Assembly: GCA_946965045.2 (NCBI GenBank)
Contig: OX337230.1
Location: 310,001 to 374,000 of the forward strand
Origin: Epithemia pelagica
Taxonomy: Eukaryota; Protista; Bacillariophyta
Direction: 5' to 3'
Length of the DNA: 64,000 bases
A model generated the notes under the pieces. That model was not told where the DNA came from. It searched no databases and saw nothing but the letters and a program-made list of their open reading frames with translations. This document shows, in pieces, positions 6,899 to 62,110 of the stretch; the first letter of the stretch is position 1; every line of letters begins with the position of its first letter. The position numbers and the translations under genes were made by a program.

Positions 6899-8026
6899 AT
6901 GATCAACCCATACAAATCGAGGAAGAAAACAGTTCCACCCTTGGTGGTCAAACCAAACTTTCCAGTCACAAAGATACCTCCATCTAATGAAGAAATGATG
7001 ATCAACCCATATGAGCTAGAGGAAATAGGGACCCCAATGGTCAAAACGCACTCTCCAACCCCGAAAACTTGCGACGGTGAACATGACAAGAAGCCACCGC
7101 CTGCGTCCAAATCAATAATCAAATGTCATCCACTTCCTTCTTCTAAGCTTGATACCAAGGAAGAAGAGGAGAAGAAACTACCACCAATCAAGCGCCCATC
7201 GTATCAGTTGATCCCAAACCCATATAAGAAGAAGCTCAAGGTTGCCGATCCATCTACTATTCCAATCTTGCTATTACGTGACTCTCCTCCGATGTGTAAA
7301 CCAAGAGCAAACCGAGATAAACTGCATCTCGAAGTTATTCGGTTCACTGAGCTTGTCAATAAAATCTATGGATCCAATGATGTTCCCCCAGAGCCAGTCT
7401 GTCCTTGGTGTTTTGTAACCGACAACCTTTCAACAGATCGTAGACTTACAGGAAAATGTTGGCATCGCTTCGGTAAATCTCTCTCATGTGCCGATTGTTG
7501 TTATGGTTGTGGAGTGCCCATGAACGGATGTGATTCAGGTGGGAATGAACGTTGTTGCACCGAAGCCCTGTATATCCATGATTCGATGAATATCACACGC
7601 GAAGAATCAGACATAAACAAGGTTCCATTGGTGTGTAAGTCTTGCTTAAGGCCATGCAATTCTTATTCAGAATGCGTCTTCTCGCATGGTTGTTGGAACT
7701 CTTGCAACAAGTACTTCGTCTGGCGATTCTGTCATATTGCTGGACGGGCGTTGGTGTACGCACAATTGAAGCCCAATTGCAAAGGACCAGGCACGATTCC
7801 CAAACATGCACAGGATATTATCAAAAACGCAACAGAGTTGATGTACAACGAACTGCGAGATCCGATGGAGTCTTCTCAGTATACATCTCCATTTTGTCAT
7901 GTTCTCGACCAAGACTCCTGGTCTAAATGGCTTGTCTCCATGTCTTTCGGTCGATACTACAATTACATGCCGTTCTTCTGTCATTGTTACACAGCCTTGA
8001 TGTCTTCATCGAAACCATTGTATTAA
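6899..8026 (+). CDS. Cys/His-rich putative Zn-binding protein, 375 aa, with repeated (I/P)NPY motifs
   Basis: Long ORF with multiple CxxC pairs; paralogous to 8088-9140. Confidence 0.65.
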   Translation: MINPYKSRKKTVPPLVVKPNFPVTKIPPSNEEMMINPYELEEIGTPMVKTHSPTPKTCDGEHDKKPPPASKSIIKCHPLPSSKLDTKEEEEKKLPPIKRPSYQLIPNPYKKKLKVADPSTIPILLLRDSPPMCKPRANRDKLHLEVIRFTELVNKIYGSNDVPPEPVCPWCFVTDNLSTDRRLTGKCWHRFGKSLSCADCCYGCGVPMNGCDSGGNERCCTEALYIHDSMNITREESDINKVPLVCKSCLRPCNSYSECVFSHGCWNSCNKYFVWRFCHIAGRALVYAQLKPNCKGPGTIPKHAQDIIKNATELMYNELRDPMESSQYTSPFCHVLDQDSWSKWLVSMSFGRYYNYMPFFCHCYTALMSSSKPLY

Positions 8027-8087
8027 ACAAAGACTCGACTTCTTCCAAAGGCAAACTGGGAACAGATAACAAGATTTATAATATATG

Positions 8088-9140
8088 TCAATGATCATTA
8101 CCATCCATATTTCCACGTTCCAACTCCGCCGTCTCAGCCATTCTTTCGAGACAATTACGGAAGCACCTGACAAAAAGTGGCATGTAGTTGCGAAAACCAG
8201 CCGTAGAATGAGGCAACGAAAGCAACCAAACTGCCCATGTTTTATCAGATGCTCGGGCATAATCGTATGGGGCACAATCGTTATCATCAAAATAGAAACG
8301 GGATCGCAATTCCTCAAGCCAAACGCTGCGGACAATAGTAAACATTGGCCAGGTGATTTGACGGGGAAAGTTCACACCATCGTAAAATGATGTTATTTGA
8401 AAAGTACGCGCCACAATATGGCGTATGAGCATACAGAACTGCCACACAAAGTGCTTGTTCTCAGATTCCACACAGACACTGCATGAATCCAAATCTGGTT
8501 GTGGAATCCCAAAAGGTATTGAGCGTTCGGGAATTCGGAAACATTCCCTACACACCTGACAATGAAATGTTGGATGCCTGTGGCGGTGACATAAGTTACA
8601 ACGCATCAAAAAACTCTGCTGCCAGATAACCGAATAATCGAGATATGCCGCACGTGTTACCACTGTATTATTTCCATGATTGCACTGGTGATGTGGTGTG
8701 GGACGACCAAGGATAACACAGTATGGACAGAGTTTCTCACCTCTAAGCATTTCGTCCACCAACCGTTTGAATTCAGTCTGGATTTCATGACCGACACGCA
8801 TCTCTTCTCTGAGTTGTTCTATGACTTGTGGTACATCTTCTTCTTCATTATCGTAATCAAAAAAGATCCTCCCAGCGTCCCTGTAACAAGGCCGATCATT
8901 CACTTCCAAGTTCCTGTCGTTGATCGCCTGCATTTCTCGTCGTCGTCTACGTTCCCGAACATAAAAATCTTCTTCCTCCGATTCATCTCCCGATTCATCC
9001 TCCGGTTGGTCCTCCGGATTGTCAGCCATTCTGTTTGCAGTCTCCTTCTCTTCGTTTTGCTGTGAATGCAAATACCTGTACTTGTTGCTTCTTCTTTGGA
9101 TTTTTATGAAACCTCTGCTGTCATATGAACGAGAGTTCAA
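8088..9140 (-). CDS. Cys/His-rich putative Zn-binding protein, about 350 aa; convergent paralogue of 6899-8026
   Basis: Shared motifs CPxC, VCxxCxR, NKxFVWxFC and WxxWLxS...NYMPxF. Start codon uncertain. Confidence 0.65.
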   Translation of the reverse strand: MNSRSYDSRGFIKIQRRSNKYRYLHSQQNEEKETANRMADNPEDQPEDESGDESEEEDFYVRERRRRREMQAINDRNLEVNDRPCYRDAGRIFFDYDNEEEDVPQVIEQLREEMRVGHEIQTEFKRLVDEMLRGEKLCPYCVILGRPTPHHQCNHGNNTVVTRAAYLDYSVIWQQSFLMRCNLCHRHRHPTFHCQVCRECFRIPERSIPFGIPQPDLDSCSVCVESENKHFVWQFCMLIRHIVARTFQITSFYDGVNFPRQITWPMFTIVRSVWLEELRSRFYFDDNDCAPYDYARASDKTWAVWLLSLPHSTAGFRNYMPLFVRCFRNCLERMAETAELERGNMDGNDH

Positions 9141-9285
9141 CTGGAAATAGATCCACGGATAACCGATCGGTCGCGTTTGTGTACAGAAATCGTCACACTA
9201 TACTATTCACTGTGAGTATTACCACATACTGTGAGGATAAGTGTAATCATTCCCAACATGGTCGCGTTTCACTCGCTGGGCTGAC

Positions 9286-9560
9286 CTATCGGTGTGGCTT
9301 TGCAAAATTCCATTGACATGGAACAATGACATGCTTCTAGAACTTGAATGGCTCCAAATTTTCGTAGAGACCATTTGGGTATCATTTGCATGGACAGTAA
9401 AGGCTCTGAACTTGTCTATCATCAACCAAAAAACTTGCAATAGACCCTACCGGTGTGGTGTTGCCGTCGTCCCAAAATTCTATGGACATGGAGCAAAGAC
9501 ATGCTTCTAGAACTCGAATGGCTCCAAATTTTCTAGAGACCCTTGGGGTATCATAGGCAT
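9286..9560. repeat. Imperfect direct duplication, period about 170 bp
   Basis: GACATGG..CAA.GACATGCTTCTAGAACT.GAATGGCTCCAAATTTTC occurs at ~9315 and ~9485. Confidence 0.8.
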
Positions 9561-9621
9561 TGATTGATGGTAGGTAGTGGTTTTGCTGACAGGTGGACAT
9601 GGTCTTGTATATTAGAAATCT

Positions 9622-12468
9622 CTATTCGTCACTAGATTTCTGGCCCGACGCCAAGCCTCCAATTTCATGAGAATTGTCATCCTCGTTTTGTGTTACGGTA
9701 GCACTCAAAGATCTTGCATTTGTGCTAAAAAACCAACCAATCGTATGATTTCCCACATTCTTGTCTTTCGGTGGTATGGAGTGTGTATGGACAGATGTTC
9801 CATGTCTGATGATTCTCCCGTCCCATGCGATCGCAATGCCATGGAATAACCGGATACAAAGCCCATGATAAGTCTTGTCGTTATGCTTTATAAGGACGTT
9901 GGGAAGGACGAAATACCAATCGTTGGTGCTGCCCGGGTTGGTTTCTGTCCAGATTGTAAAGGACACTGATGCATCATGAATATCATAGTGGCTTGCATTC
10001 ATCAAATCGCAACTCAAAATGATGGATGATGACACACCCCTTTCGTTTCCTCCCAATTCGTTTGGGACATCCAAACCGAAGTTTGTTTCCAGGTGTCTGA
10101 AAGCCGATAACACACCAGGGAATTTCCTCTCACAGAATCGCCGAACACCTCCACAGATTTTTGGCAATATATTCATCATGTTGGGAGATATTTTGAAAAG
10201 TTTGTCAGAAAAGAATGTACTTCTGCCACCTGTTTTTGTGCACACACCAACAGATGTCATGGTCCCCATATCACCATGGTTACACCTTGCATTGGCTGAT
10301 CTCTCTAGTGTACCGCTCTGCGCGAAGTGACATGACCTCTTGTGTAACAATGAAAGTAGGTTTTTGTCATTTTGCTGAAGTGTTGTCACTTTGACATGGC
10401 TGATGGTTTCGTTTTTACCCGCGTACCCACGTGTCCGAACAATGAATGTTGTATCTTCTCCGGTTTCCCTTACATCAAACAGGAGCGGACGGACTGAAGT
10501 ATCAGGCGGAGGGGACAGGTTTCTATACAATGCTCCATGGACGTACTTTCGGCATCCAGTCTTGTTAGCACTGGCTTTATTCAGCAGTGTTTCACGATAC
10601 CACACTCTAAGAGAATGTTGGTCGTTTGGTGTCATTTTTGGTCTGGACTTTTCACTTGTATAATGATCAGGGGCCCAAAGTGGAGAACCACTTTCGACAT
10701 CAGACGCTTGGTAGCATTCATGGACAACTCTCTTTGCACTTTGTGTCCAATCAATACACCAACACTTGACAACCTTTTTGAGGAATGCCCCACCACTTGG
10801 TTGGCCGTCGGAATGTCGTAAGCGCAGCCAGGATATAGGTAGTGCTACCAAAGATGAAGTGCATTCCGATGTTGCATACCCAGTATTCATTATCATTGCC
10901 GAAGTATAAAAAATACCGGCCAAAGGGATGATAACAATCACGTCATGGAAAATATGGTCCATACAATCATCACAGTTTTTCGTGGATGTGCGACAATGGA
11001 AGATTGTATCGTCAAACGCAGACCACACGGTTTTGGGGTATTTCCGATGTCCCTTATGTCGTTGACAGCGATTCAGTACACATTCTACCAAGAAGGCACA
11101 TGGAGACCGGGTTGTTAAGAACTTCAGGTCACATTCTGTCACATGAAGCTTGTTGTCTTCGAAACAACAATGGCTTGCTGGATCTTCCGCCACCTCACCA
11201 ACCATGTCTTTCATTTGTTCGTACATGTTAGGTAATTTTCCCATGATTGTCTGGAGGTCTGTTGGTGTGATGTTGTAGTCTTTCAGAACCTTTGTATAGC
11301 AGATGCCGAACACTCTCCGATCATCATTGCTACTGAGACAGAGTGATAGTAAGTCGCGTAGTCTTTTTGCTACCTTGTCCATGTCAGGAATTGCAAAAAA
11401 ACACATTTCTGTATGATCGGATTCATTTGGTTTGGAGAATTTTGTCGTCAAATGGCTAGGTTTCTCAGCCTGTCGTCTCATATACTTCTTCATCGTTTCA
11501 TGTGTTAGTGTCAACTTCGATAGGCCCTCTTGTCGTCGTTGCTTGTTCGTGGGTAGTCCCCTGGATGAACCAATGGTCTTACATCCTTTTCTTTTCCTTT
11601 CCGGTGAAGTATTTTGTTCGTCAGTATCGTCATGATTATCGTGTATTGGAGACTCGTGAATCTCCTTCGTACCTCGTTTGTCTTGTATGCGCTGATCCGT
11701 TTGTGCTGTCGTGTTGATGCTACTTCCCTTGTTATGGTCGTTTTTTGTCATTTGGTCATCGTTGTTCTTTTTGCTACCTTTTTGTTTGTCGGTACTATCC
11801 TTTCCTTCTTTGGTTTGTGTCGCATCATCTTGGTTGACACTGTCATTGTGACAGCTAGACGGATTATCACTGTCAGGTGCGTTGTTGGCATTCTTAGACA
11901 CGTCACATTCCTTGCCCTTTTGTTTGTCTGTAGAACCATTGCCATCTCTGCTTTGTATCTCTTCCCCTTGTCCACATTCATCTTGGTGACTGGAGGTTGC
12001 TTTCTGACCGCTCTGTCTGTTCCGATCATCCCTCTCCTGATTGTCCTTGGAATTCCAACCAAGTTTGGATAGGCCATCCTGCCCTCCACGACTCGCTGTA
12101 ATGTGATGAATGTCCTTTTCTCCCTCTCTACGAGGTGATTGATTTGGTTGACTATTACCTCTATCAGTTGAGGGACGGTTAGGCTCTCTCTGACGGGTAC
12201 GCCTAGAATGATCGTTGTGTCCAGGATGACTGTCACTAAGTGACAAATGGTGCCTGGAATGTTCGTTGTATCCAGGGAATCTCTCCCAATCCATCGGATG
12301 TCGATTAGACCATTGATTGTGGCTATCTCTGTATACCGAATGGTGCCTTGTATGTTCTCTTGAATGTTCGTTGTATCCAGAGAATCTCCTCCAATCCATC
12401 GAATGTCGATTAGACAATTGATTTTGATTATCATGTCTTCTTTTTCTATCCCGGTAAGTGTTTTCCAT
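9622..12468 (-). CDS. TET/JBP-like 2OG-Fe(II) dioxygenase domain protein (C-terminal part of a larger gene)
   Basis: C-terminal NASHYDIHD (HxD), WYFVLPNV, LFHGIAIAWDGRIIRHGTS (distal H), preceded by MTSVGV. In frame with upstream ORF 12532-14847 across a single TGA. Confidence 0.7.
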   Translation of the reverse strand: MENTYRDRKRRHDNQNQLSNRHSMDWRRFSGYNEHSREHTRHHSVYRDSHNQWSNRHPMDWERFPGYNEHSRHHLSLSDSHPGHNDHSRRTRQREPNRPSTDRGNSQPNQSPRREGEKDIHHITASRGGQDGLSKLGWNSKDNQERDDRNRQSGQKATSSHQDECGQGEEIQSRDGNGSTDKQKGKECDVSKNANNAPDSDNPSSCHNDSVNQDDATQTKEGKDSTDKQKGSKKNNDDQMTKNDHNKGSSINTTAQTDQRIQDKRGTKEIHESPIHDNHDDTDEQNTSPERKRKGCKTIGSSRGLPTNKQRRQEGLSKLTLTHETMKKYMRRQAEKPSHLTTKFSKPNESDHTEMCFFAIPDMDKVAKRLRDLLSLCLSSNDDRRVFGICYTKVLKDYNITPTDLQTIMGKLPNMYEQMKDMVGEVAEDPASHCCFEDNKLHVTECDLKFLTTRSPCAFLVECVLNRCQRHKGHRKYPKTVWSAFDDTIFHCRTSTKNCDDCMDHIFHDVIVIIPLAGIFYTSAMIMNTGYATSECTSSLVALPISWLRLRHSDGQPSGGAFLKKVVKCWCIDWTQSAKRVVHECYQASDVESGSPLWAPDHYTSEKSRPKMTPNDQHSLRVWYRETLLNKASANKTGCRKYVHGALYRNLSPPPDTSVRPLLFDVRETGEDTTFIVRTRGYAGKNETISHVKVTTLQQNDKNLLSLLHKRSCHFAQSGTLERSANARCNHGDMGTMTSVGVCTKTGGRSTFFSDKLFKISPNMMNILPKICGGVRRFCERKFPGVLSAFRHLETNFGLDVPNELGGNERGVSSSIILSCDLMNASHYDIHDASVSFTIWTETNPGSTNDWYFVLPNVLIKHNDKTYHGLCIRLFHGIAIAWDGRIIRHGTSVHTHSIPPKDKNVGNHTIGWFFSTNARSLSATVTQNEDDNSHEIGGLASGQKSSDE

Positions 12469-58574: not shown

Positions 58575-59510
58575 TGCCTTCCCATTTGTGATACCATCCG
58601 TTTGGTTGCTGCTCACAGAGTCGACAAAAACACCATCTTTTCCTGTCCATTTGTGGCAGTGTCGCACAGGTACGATTCAGACGCCCACCAATCGCGGCAA
58701 TCTGACTGGCAAGAGCCACCATACTGCAGCTCGCAAGGCCTTTTACGAAGGGTGGGAGATTCCAGACGCGGTTGCGGTGCGTATCCAAGATTTCCGCGGT
58801 CTGACTGTGTCCTCCCGCCACAACGAGACAAGATCCCACGGCTACCATTCCACACTTATAACGTTGTACGGGAAAGCAGCAAATCAGAATGAGTCGTCCA
58901 AGCGGACGAGAAGGAAATCACTGTAGACAAAACGTCGTCGTTTCTCTTGTCACAAGGCTTTGGAAAGTCCAAATACTCCACCGAGCGTTTTTTGCAGCCG
59001 CCAACGACAGAGATGCGGCGACCAGTGACCGCGCAGGCACAAGTACTCCGAGGAATGTTCATGCTTGGTCCCGTAGTAACAGAATGGTTGCAAGTATCAA
59101 TAATATCCACCGACGATGAGACCTCCTACGATTTCCCCCTGTTGCGTCCACCCATTAAAAGAATACATCGATCGTGAACCGCAACAGCACGGCATCCTCT
59201 TCGTTCCGTTGATAAGCGACAATTAAATGTCATCCAATTGATCTCATGTATGCTGCTTGTTGTAGAATATGATTGCAGCAAATCGTTGGCATCAATTGGT
59301 TCTATACAATCCAAAATTGAATGTCCATTGCATCCTCCCACAACGTAGATGCCTCCGTTGCACACAACAGCGGCATGTCCAACACGTTTCTTGTTTGACG
59401 AGTTTGGCTTTGATTGATCCAACACGAGAAGGGAATTGACATAGCCTCCCATCAGGATGACGGTTGTTGCGTCGTTGGTTTTGTCTTCGTGTTATCGGCA
59501 CAATATTGAA
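58575..59510 (-). pseudogene. Kelch-repeat protein pseudogene
   Basis: VILMGG, GIYVVGG, CILLMGG, RISVVGG, CLVVAGG and IAAIGG repeats spread over three frames (frameshifts ~59130 and ~58865); interrupted by the Copia element. Confidence 0.8.
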
Positions 59511-59734
59511 AATATCGCCTCGCGTTCTCACGCCTACGCGCTTAAATAAAGAATTCGCACCACATATCTTTCTTTAAGTGCTCGACGGTGACAACTCAGA
59601 ACGCATACGCTCTACAATTTCTGGGGGAAGACTCCATCCAATTTAATTTTGCCTCACATAATCTCTGTTGCCACCTGAGTCCAAGTCGCCGCAGGAGAGT
59701 TTTCGCAAATCACATACCCCCGTTTCCGAAAAGG

Positions 59735-60220
59735 ATGAACATGTTTCGTTCCTTTTTGACTCTTGTTGTCCTGGCGTTTTCCTATACTGGCATTTGTGAG
59801 GCGGACGATCCCGAGCCCTCCACTCTCCGCCGGACGGCCGATACGACAGAGGCTGTGGCAGAGCAATTCGACGACATGGCTCAGGCTCAGATCTTTGGGG
59901 ACTGGTTTGGTGGTAGCGGTATTGACGTTGATGGCGCTGACGTTGGATTGGGAAATATTTTTGCTGCTACTGTCATAGGTAACGTACAAGCTTGAAATTG
60001 TGGACGTGGAGAAGCACTGTCTAATCTGTTTTGCATTCTTTTGTTTCAACCAGGTATTGCGCGTAACCCATCATTGGCAGACGAGCTTGGCCGAACGGTT
60101 CTTTTTGCCAGTTTCGTAGTTGCGAAAGGAGTCGAAGTCCTGTCTGATGATACTGCTCGCGCGGAAGTGTTCTCTATTATCGACAAGGTTGCTTTGGACT
60201 TGTTTCCCCACACACCCTAA
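59735..60220 (+). CDS. Signal peptide fused to atp9/subunit-c-like sequence, copy 1, 136 aa; intron 59979-60053
   Basis: Spliced product contains GADVGLGNIFAATVIG|IARNPSLADELGRTVLFASFVVAKG; N-terminus MNMFRSFLTLVVLAFSYTGICEA. Confidence 0.7.
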
Positions 60221-60909
60221 CCTTCACCACCCCCAACTTAACGAACCCCTGCCCTTATGCCAACATCTGCAACCCGAAGTTGGATGGGGAGGACAACGCA
60301 AAACGCAAAGCTCGTAAACCGCCGCCATTATATCGTTGATGTGATGGAATATGCAAAAAGACTCTTTGAGATGAGTACATGATGATGGATTTCGGTTTCA
60401 AGTTGATTGAGGGGCCCTTTGAGCCACGCGGAACATTGAAAGTCTATGCTGCAGTATTTGCAGTTCTAAAGTAGTAGAGGGCATGATCGATGGGTCCAGA
60501 ATTCTAAATGGAACAGAGGGAAGAGATTTTTAATACCTATAGAGCTAGCTGGAGAAAGAGGAGAGCTTTACCACCACCACATTCATGCAATTGGGAAAAA
60601 TAATGACAAAATCGAAAATCAAAATCCCCTCGCGTGTTCGACGGTACGCGCTTACATAAAGAAGTCTATCTTCTGACCACCACGTACCACTTATCATCTT
60701 TCTTTAAAACTTGAAAAAAGAAAAAGGGATACATATAGAATTAGTGCTCAACGGTCACAACGCATAAGCTCTACAATTTTGGGGGGGACTCCAAGGATCC
60801 ATCCAATTTAGTTCGTCCTCACATAATTTCTGTTGCCACCTGAGCCCAAGTCATCTACTTGGGCCGCAGGAGAGTTTTCGCACATCACATACCCTCGGTT
60901 CCGAAAAGG

Positions 60910-61379
60910 ATGAACATGTTTCGTTCCTTTTTGACTCTTGTTGTCCTGGCGTTTGCCTTGACCGGCATTTGTGAGGCGGACGATCCCGAGCCCTCCACTC
61001 TTTGTCGGACGGCCGATACGACGGAGGCTGTCGCAGAGCAATTCGACGACACGAATCAGCCTCAGATCTTAGGGGTCTGGTTTGGTGGTAGCGACAATGG
61101 CGCTGACGTTGGATTGGGAAATATTTTTGCTGCTACTGTCATAGGTAACGTACAAGCTTGAAATTGTGTACGTGGAGAAGCACTGTCTAATCTGTTTTGC
61201 ATTCTTCTTTGTTTCTACCAGGTATTGCACGTAACCCATCATTGAGAGACGAGCTTGTTCGAACGAGTCTTATTGGAAGTTTCGTAGTTGAGAAAGGAGT
61301 CGGATTCCTGTCCAATGAGATTGCTCGAAAGAAAGTGTTCTCTATTGTCGACGACATTCTTTTGGACTGGAAGGTCTAG
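60910..61379 (+). CDS. Signal peptide fused to atp9/subunit-c-like sequence, copy 2, 130 aa; intron 61145-61221
   Basis: Spliced product contains GADVGLGNIFAATVIG|IARNPSLRDELVRTSLIGSFVVEKGVGF; same intron position and phase as copy 1. Confidence 0.7.
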
Positions 61380-62072
61380 CAAGAACCGCTATGCAACATC
61401 TGCGGCCCGGAAGTAGGATGGGGAGGACAACCCAAAGCTCGAAAACAGCCCCCGTGAGATTGGTGATGTGATGGAATATGCAAAAAGACTCTTTTGATGA
61501 GTAAGCGATGGATGTTGCTTTCAATTTGATTCGGGGAACATTTCAGCAATTGGTAACATTGAAAGTCTAAGCTACAACATTAGTTATGTAAGCTTACGAT
61601 GTTTGGAGTTTGGATAGAAATTTCATGAGTATAAGGAGAAAGGAACACATGCAACCCTTTTCTTCATTCTCTTTACGTCTACGGATAGAATAGTAGAGGG
61701 CATGAGAGATTGAATAGTTTGCCCGATGATGTAAATGGGGCGGGAATGAAGAAAACTACCATGACAGCTATGTGTTGCACCTGTATGTCATCGCCCCTTT
61801 TTCAACGATGGGCAAAAGGGAGCGCCTCTGCCACAAAGAACCACCCCCACCCACAAAATGTCTCTCATGAGAGTGTGTCCAATTCTCCTCGTTTGGCCGA
61901 ATCAACATCAAGTTCTATCTCTTAAATCAATAGACAATATTAACGCTGAGTAGTTTCTGTCACAAAAGCTGTATGCACGCGGCACAATGCTCTTCATTGC
62001 ATTCATCCAAACGACGAGAGAGAGCGGAAGAAGAACAAACAAGCAAGTGTCTCGTATCAAAATCCTCTTGTC

Positions 62073-62074
<2 letters not shown>

Positions 62075-62108
<34 letters not shown>
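62075..62108. repeat. (TC)n microsatellite
   Basis: About 17 TC units. Confidence 0.9.

Positions 62109-62110
<2 letters not shown>

Follow-up and report, generated by a model that had tools for sequence, protein, structure and literature searches.

Tandem nuclear genes of the diatom Epithemia pelagica probably carry a plastid-type ATP synthase subunit c fragment with a mitochondrial-type loop behind a predicted signal peptide

How does a piece of the c subunit of F-type ATP synthase come to lie behind a signal-peptide-like N-terminus in a nuclear gene, from which organelle was it taken, and does it still serve a purpose? These questions are raised by a 64,000-nt stretch of Epithemia pelagica DNA (contig OX337230.1 of assembly GCA_946965045.2, positions 310,001 to 374,000; referred to here as the window), which holds two tandem two-exon genes, copy 1 (W1; 59735-60220) and copy 2 (W2; 60910-61379). 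An earlier note, made from the letters alone, had described them as nuclear, intron-bearing and duplicated, and had explained them as a new gene born here by transfer of mitochondrial atp9. Gene models and transcript-like contigs bear out the description, and the origin is likely to be a different one: the best explanation as a whole is that both genes belong to a family built from a plastid-derived c-subunit fragment behind a signal peptide, in which the loop of the window genes later became mitochondrial in type.

Both window genes are real, transcribed and spliced nuclear genes. In run X4, which we take as RNA from its small total, a longest contig of 19.6 kb and the adaptor at contig ends, a 403-nt contig (depth 297) joins position 61142 to 61220 with GT..AG ends and thereby removes the intron of copy 2 exactly; it has no other differences from the window and extends to at least 61493. 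X4 contigs also cover the leader and exon 1 of copy 2 (60871-61142), and a second spliced contig, carrying the allele of the other haplotype, removes the 75-nt intron of copy 1. Neither splice joint was present in the three DNA-like runs X1-X3. Both introns predicted in the earlier note are hence precisely removed in transcript-like contigs.

Exon 1 of copy 1 (59735-59978, forward strand), delimited by translation, splice model and family alignment, encodes a signal-peptide-like N-terminus (59735-59803; 23 amino acids, ...GICEA|DD), an acidic spacer and the helix-1 remnant GADVGLGNIFAATVI(G). The intron (59979-60053; 75 nt, GT..AG, phase 1) splits the Gly codon before IAR, and exon 2 (60054-60220) supplies the loop IARNPSLADEL, a helix-2 remnant and an amphipathic acidic tail, up to the stop codon. 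Copy 2, on the same strand, is laid out in the same way, with a signal-peptide-like N-terminus (60910-60978), spacer and helix-1 remnant in exon 1 (60910-61144), an intron of 77 nt (61145-61221; GT..AG, phase 1) that splits the Gly codon before IARNPSL, and the loop IARNPSLRDEL, a helix-2 remnant, the tail and the stop codon in exon 2 (61222-61379). According to the splice model the proteins are 136 (W1) and 130 (W2) amino acids long, and both run from a hydrophobic N-terminus, MNMFRSFLTLVVLAF...GICEA|DD, through an acidic spacer and GADVGLGNIFAATVIG|IARNPSL(A/R)DEL... to the amphipathic acidic tail, a helix peculiar to this family. Translation and hydropathy confirmed the signal-peptide-like start and the acidic spacer in both copies, and the peptide that had been quoted across the splice junction does span the joint.

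The core of these proteins, 37-45 residues in length, matches the loop-proximal half of the c hairpin (c residues ~18-54), which runs from the end of helix 1 through the R-N/Q-P loop into the beginning of helix 2. As had been noticed, this similarity is visible only after splicing: single exons matched nothing in Pfam, whereas the spliced junction peptides matched ATP-synt_C alone (E 0.002 and 0.0097). The window hairpins reach 18.8 and 16.6 bits and their relatives 13.2-19.5 bits, which is below the Pfam gathering threshold of 24 bits (PF00137); among the family hairpins, ATP-synt_C was the sole match for five of six and for the relative P0012, in a constant register. Comparison with the organism's own mitochondrial atp9 gave 44.7 bits for W2 and 38.1 bits for W1 in BLASTP, and local alignment scores of 105 and 88, respectively, while shuffled sequences scored 24 +/- 4 and none of 2000 scored as high. 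Across all eight hairpin units, none of 2000 shuffles did as well as the real sequence against whichever organellar c subunit is closer, and no more than 4/2000 did so against the more distant one. A PDB sequence search with the W2 hairpin returned F-type c subunits in 25 of 25 matches, the best of them mitochondrial (E 1.2e-5), and the family profile A5 did so in 39 of 39, with a chloroplast c subunit on top (E 7e-7). Aligned with hhalign to real c subunits, the family gave a probability of 98.3 and a P of 2.6e-14 over 37 columns corresponding to c residues 18-54; the similarity to subunit c is therefore significant. Helix 1 of the window genes is Gly-rich (GADVGLG), the Arg-(Asn/Gln)-Pro loop is present, and IARNPSL is invariant across four copies of the window locus. 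Taken together, these results show that the core of the window genes descends from an F-type c subunit. The organism's own atp9 was located on the mitochondrion-like contig C22 (GC 22%), in line with the earlier statement that it is still mitochondrial, and its own atpH on the plastid-like contig C23 (GC 29%).

Whole-genome protein searches revealed diverged paralogues at C10:~802000-807200 alone (minus strand; L024 4092-9234), which gives this diatom two family loci, C3 (window) and C10. The C10 locus comprises three genes of the same build (predicted signal peptide, spacer motif, Gly-rich helix 1, intron, loop, helix 2, tail), and both the spacer motif, EPS.LRRT...QF.D.T.Q.Q..GDWFG, and the tail are common to window and C10 genes. 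One of the three is a polyprotein of three hairpin units, in which the tail of a unit continues in frame into the next spacer and helix 1, while an intron interrupts each hairpin at the same codon; the polyprotein is intact, with all three units, on the second-haplotype contig L029 (~7950-10830). The introns of the two loci occupy the same codon position and are homologous in sequence (TACAAGCTTG...TTGT), so the intron is older than the split of the loci. With spacer and tail in common, and with homologous introns in an identical codon position, window and C10 genes go back to one ancestor.

A profile search of 1.84 billion representative proteins (E <= 0.001) returned nine, namely one window exon-1 call, seven fragments fitting C10 genes (here or on the second haplotype) and one foreign protein, P0012 (155 amino acids, intronless, from a Logan contig). 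Starting from this protein, a word search led to P0013 (= L027:3968-4312; 115 amino acids, intronless) on a 37-kb metagenome contig. Both proteins have a signal-peptide-like start, the stretches ..LW(G/S)(Q/K)AVEGIARQPEA.. and ..KAG.LGS.., and a Pro-rich C-terminus as in the C10 and H2 proteins. The genes flanking them share just 32-45% identity with their best matches in this genome, which indicates that their carriers are distant organisms. No candidate came from a word search with window exon 2, and no usable match from an ESM Atlas feature search with P0012. The window genes thus appear to be the most divergent branch of a small, older nuclear family. The birth of a new gene at this site by transfer of mitochondrial atp9 is not supported in view of the C10 paralogues, which share the intron codon, and of the intronless relatives in two other organisms.

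From which organelle, then, did the family arise? Its backbone appears to be a plastid-type (atpH) c-subunit fragment. The C10_3 hairpin finds chloroplast c subunits as its best PDB matches (E 5.5e-5), C10_2c is identical to atpH at 24/27 bases, and the eight-residue consensus loop outside the window genes, QPEAENKI, agrees with the own atpH at all eight positions and with the own atp9 at one. The window loop, NPSL(R/A)DEL, agrees with the own atp9 (NPSLKDEL) at seven of its eight positions and with the own atpH and the family consensus at one each. This patch of atp9 type lies at 60065-60088 in copy 1 (NPSLADEL; segment identity table and run test) and at 61233-61256 in copy 2 (NPSLRDEL; codon view and segment identity table), both on the forward strand. 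On either side of it, the 19 residues of helix 1 match the own atp9 at 5-8 positions, the own atpH at 8-9 and the family consensus at 8-11, and the 19 residues of helix 2 at 0-3, 1-3 and 3-7 positions, respectively. The informative sites of mitochondrial type are clustered, in one run that spans hairpin positions 20-27 (permutation p 0.002-0.1).

At the DNA level, the loop patch of copy 2 is identical to the own atp9 at 20/24 bases, the bases flanking the intron (GGT ATT GCx CGT) are of the family/atpH type, and a nucleotide continuity test detected no flanking organellar DNA beside the patch. Another likeness lies in helix 1, where GNIF of the window haplotype matches GNVF of atp9 at 11/12 bases; since the alleles of the other haplotype carry ..FWGAT.. 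and ..VLGAT.. here, with W-G at positions 10-11 as in the plastid-type family, GNIF is probably recent. Of the likeness to atp9 claimed in the earlier note, the part in the eight-residue loop (7/8 residues) stood, whereas the flanks are of the family type and the backbone resembles atpH. The atp9 likeness of the window genes therefore appears real but secondary, and concentrated in the loop.

A history consistent with these patterns would begin with the recruitment of a plastid-type (atpH) c-subunit fragment behind a signal peptide. One intron would then have been gained in this lineage at an AG|GT site within the hairpin, followed by duplication of the intron-bearing gene. Later, in the window branch, the eight-residue loop may have been replaced by the organism's own atp9-type loop through a gene-conversion-like patch from mitochondrial DNA or from a nuclear mitochondrial DNA segment (NUMT). 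The window loop is most simply explained by a short stretch copied in this way from mitochondrial DNA, a step to which we give an even chance. The products may since have evolved fast by gene conversion and birth-and-death, which we propose with low confidence.

The window products are not proton-translocating c subunits, because their mature chains are acidic, have no membrane-length hydrophobic segment and carry Lys at the carboxylate position. Net charges are -13 and -8 in the two proteins, and the maximum 19-residue Kyte-Doolittle mean of the mature chains is 1.44 and 1.21, compared with 2.33 for the own atp9, which agrees with the earlier view that the c-derived sequence has ceased to be a membrane hairpin. 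In the HMMER alignment, the residue of the window genes that faces the c-subunit Glu is the Lys of ..VEKG/..VAKG, and Glu occupies this position only in C10 units (..IIEG). The Glu of ..VVEKG in copy 2 was considered as the conserved proton-binding carboxylate and rejected: it matched the c-subunit Glu only in an ungapped alignment, HMMER puts the adjacent Lys there, and the underlying change (GCG>GAG) is unique to copy 2. By hydropathy the N-terminus is the sole strongly hydrophobic segment of the window proteins, and with its basic start (MNMFR), hydrophobic core (LTLVVLAF) and small residues at -3/-1 (C-E-A) it predicts entry into the secretory pathway. Plastid import is not expected, since all family members are devoid of an aromatic residue at +1 of the predicted cleavage site and so do not show the diatom plastid-import motif.

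The AlphaFold2 (AF2) model of P0012 contains helices at residues 83-96, 98-121 and 127-141 (block-mean predicted local distance difference test score, pLDDT, 74-85 there), that is, a helix-loop-helix and a third helix, and suggests a soluble helix-loop-helix capped by a tail helix. A Foldseek search of PDB with this model gave no match at E <= 0.001; the top rows were globins with a TM of ~0.22, which is meaningless for a small helical model. EPS-x-(L/R)-R-R sites precede the hairpin units, and the dibasic site is gone in copy 2 (LCR). With low confidence, we suggest that the products could be soluble secretory-pathway proteins of three helices, which may be set free from precursors at the conserved EPS-x-L-R-R sites. 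Quite unlikely, in our estimate, is a bolder reading, by which the window hairpin was drawn from two organelles, with the mitochondrial c-ring loop grafted into a plastid c-subunit backbone, and the family would consist of secreted soluble mimics of the stalk-facing surface of the c-ring. If it were true, the products might self-assemble via the GxGxGxG helix or serve as binders of, or decoys for, molecules that recognise c-ring loops, and the most hydrophobic ATP synthase subunit would have been recycled into a new protein class.

Syntenic second copies of the window and C10 loci are present on L001 and L029 (ENA analysis ERZ21939226). On the grounds of synteny and of a G/A variant at 59904, which also occurs in DNA-like runs of the same study with both forms in one sample, these contigs most likely represent the other haplotype. 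Open frames of 130-141 codons with canonical splice sites are found in 3/4 window-locus alleles. The earlier statement that the genes kept their frames open thus holds for these three, but not for the other-haplotype allele of copy 1 (H1), which is transcribed despite a TGG>TAG stop. Divergence is mosaic, ranging by segment from 0 to 15% in a comparison of coding and non-coding sequence, and inconsistent as a test of positive selection. Between helix 1 and the end of the intron, W1 and W2 are nearly identical, with two mismatches, whereas their exon 2 sequences have diverged by 22%, and this mosaic indicates gene conversion. The family seems to undergo birth-and-death turnover under weak average constraint, in which most frames and splice sites outlived ~1 substitution per synonymous site. 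The possibility of a dead relic, raised at the outset, can be answered in part by the spliced transcript-like contigs, whereas the ratios of non-synonymous to synonymous substitution rates (dN/dS) among the copies point to weak constraint.

The 5' leader of copy 2 contains a repeat of ~60 nt (60822-60885, forward strand) with the palindrome GCCCAAGT...ACTTGGGC, a partial version of which lies by copy 1 at ~59652-59712. At least 24 other copies are present in the genome at 87-90% identity, several of them as same-strand pairs ~6 kb apart, and the repeat region shows very high depth and many loose ends. These features suggest that the leader repeat is a piece of a long terminal repeat (LTR). Transcript-like contigs of other loci start with the same repeat, and in the window an adaptor immediately precedes position 60839. 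The window genes may use an LTR-derived start site.

Several observations weigh against a conserved family of secreted c-subunit derivatives with a transferred loop. The run type of X4 is unrecorded and its RNA nature is inferred; secretion, likewise, is a prediction from hydropathy and the -3/-1 residues. The searches brought up only two relatives outside this species. In this assembly, the C10 polyprotein (C10_2) is frameshifted in exon 2, and C10_1, a two-exon C10 member, is without an in-frame ATG. The premature stop of H1 results from G>A at 59904 (TGG>TAG); the allele is nonetheless transcribed and spliced in an X4 contig. Pairwise dN/dS among W1, W2, H1 and H2 is 0.7-1.9, the C10 alleles differ by 21 non-synonymous and 6 synonymous changes (ratio ~1.1), and the between-branch dN/dS of ~0.5-0.8 comes with a dS of ~1, near saturation. 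The invariance of the loop in four copies extends to synonymous sites and may reflect recent gene conversion. Finally, neither for atp9 nor for atpH does the synonymous-codon identity clearly exceed expectation, which leaves a DNA transfer of the loop unproven.

How do other explanations fare with the same evidence? That a hydrophobic helix rich in Gly and Ala should look like subunit c through chance or composition alone is practically inconceivable, and we count this idea as already refuted: although each single Pfam match falls under the curated cut-off, all PDB matches are c subunits in one register, the profile-profile P is 2.6e-14, and 0/2000 shuffles score as high against the closer c subunit. 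The model of the earlier note, in which an atp9 fragment (a NUMT) provided the whole hairpin and was fused here to a signal peptide, the C10 genes being unrelated or secondarily similar, finds support in W2, whose hairpin has mitochondrial c subunits as best PDB matches and scores 105 against the own atp9 and 56 against the own atpH in local alignment. GNIF of the window haplotype, with its 11/12 bases, and the apparent uptake of mitochondrial DNA by the genome, with a large copy on C13, fit as well. The single ancestor of window and C10 genes (spacer, tail, homologous intron in a shared codon position) argues in the opposite direction, as do the window sequences outside the loop, which are nearer to the family than to atp9, and the plastid-type outgroups P0012 and L027; W-G at helix-1 positions 10-11 in the other-haplotype alleles makes GNIF look recent. 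We regard this model as very unlikely. Adaptive convergence, by contrast, would leave the origin of the family unchanged and explain the loop as mimicry of the mitochondrial c-ring loop. N>D, K>E and I>L are single-base conservative steps, the codons equal those of atp9 in just 4/7 identical residues, not clearly above expectation, and no mitochondrial DNA flanks the loop. However, at six of seven changed positions the new residue is precisely that of atp9, the lineage-specific DEL included, and in two cases, E>S and A>L, all three bases of the codon had to change; our rough estimate of the chance of this is < 1e-6. A secretory-pathway protein has no obvious access to the partners of the mitochondrial c-ring, so that convergence strikes us as unlikely, though it deserves some weight.

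Weightier is the proposal that the window genes are transcribed but functionless, as decaying members of the family that are kept visible by the LTR-like leader and by gene conversion between copies. A dN/dS of ~1 or higher, the H1 stop allele that is still transcribed and spliced, mosaic divergence typical of conversion, the LTR-like repeat in the 5' leader and the C10 members broken in this assembly would all be expected of such genes. Nevertheless, 3/4 alleles keep open frames and splice sites although synonymous sites have taken on ~1 substitution each since the window and C10 genes parted, dN/dS between branches is below 1, the three-unit polyprotein is intact on the other haplotype, and hairpin residues are kept across distant organisms. 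We therefore lean against loss of function, and retain a plastid-derived c-fragment family with a later mitochondrial-type loop as the account to be carried forward.

Further observations concern the surroundings of the two loci. The 3' untranslated regions (UTRs) contain two blocks, GGATGGGGAGGACAAC and TGATGTGATGGAATATGCAAAAAGACTCTTT (60272-60287 and 60337-60367 behind copy 1; ~61414-61429 and ~61465-61495 behind copy 2), that are nearly invariant in four copies/alleles, while the UTR around them shows ~20% difference and indels; the blocks may be regulatory elements. Kelch-repeat-like open frames lie directly upstream of copy 1 (58856-59452, minus strand), and Kelch genes are also found upstream of the C10 cluster on L029 (686-1861), so both loci may stem from one segmental duplication. 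Downstream of copy 2, there is a (CT)n microsatellite of ~35 nt (62075-62109). Elsewhere in the genome, at C13:~381700-425900, at least 44 kb match the mitochondrion-like contig C22, mitochondrial tandem repeats included, and the 3.2-kb atp9-bearing piece of C13 is 100% identical to C22. This copy may be a NUMT of the whole mitogenome that arose very recently; otherwise it is an assembly artefact.

In this family, a fragment of a very hydrophobic and strongly conserved membrane subunit appears to have become the core of soluble-looking proteins with a predicted signal peptide. A multi-unit precursor is among the family members, the family spans at least three presumably algal assemblies, and one of its branches appears to unite c sequence of plastid type and of mitochondrial type in a stretch of 45 residues. 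Should the products be made, they would offer a tractable example of a membrane hairpin turned into a soluble fold, and the loop swap, if true, would be a rare datable patch of organellar DNA in an existing nuclear gene. Literature searches yielded no report of a secreted family derived from subunit c.

Secreted peptide precursors with repeated units and dibasic sites, such as yeast alpha-factor and other furin/Kex2 substrates, offer one comparison. Like them, the present family has a start that is predicted to be a signal peptide and an acidic pro-region that runs to Arg-Arg, and one family member has three units, each after an EPS-(L/R)-R-R site. They differ in that the likeness here is resemblance alone, with predicted cleavage, that the units are ~90-100 residues long rather than short peptides, and that copy 2 reads LCR. 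With the c subunits of PF00137 (atpH, atp9), the family is homologous over c residues ~18-54, including a remnant of GxGxGxG, the Arg-(Gln/Asn)-Pro loop and the start of helix 2. In contrast to these, it is nuclear, lacks one half of each helix, the first in helix 1 and the last in helix 2, and has a signal-peptide-like start, an acidic spacer, an extra tail helix and, in the window and C10 genes, an intron.

Nuclear genes of plants, yeast and humans are known to have reused organelle DNA, for the most part in the form of single exon patches. The genes of donor type, atp9 and atpH, are still in the organism's own organelle genomes, and it is exactly these sequences that the loops match best. 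Exon patches derived from NUMTs or from nuclear plastid DNA segments (NUPTs), with Ka/Ks at or above 1, have been described in nuclear genes (Noutsos et al. 2007, via PMC7037861). As they are presented in that source, such patches resemble the window genes in that organelle-derived coding sequence stands within a spliced, transcribed nuclear gene, the product of which would serve a new role. The window genes differ from them in showing no contiguous organellar DNA, in belonging to a multi-copy family that includes a polyprotein and occurs in several organisms, and in combining plastid and mitochondrial types within one hairpin.

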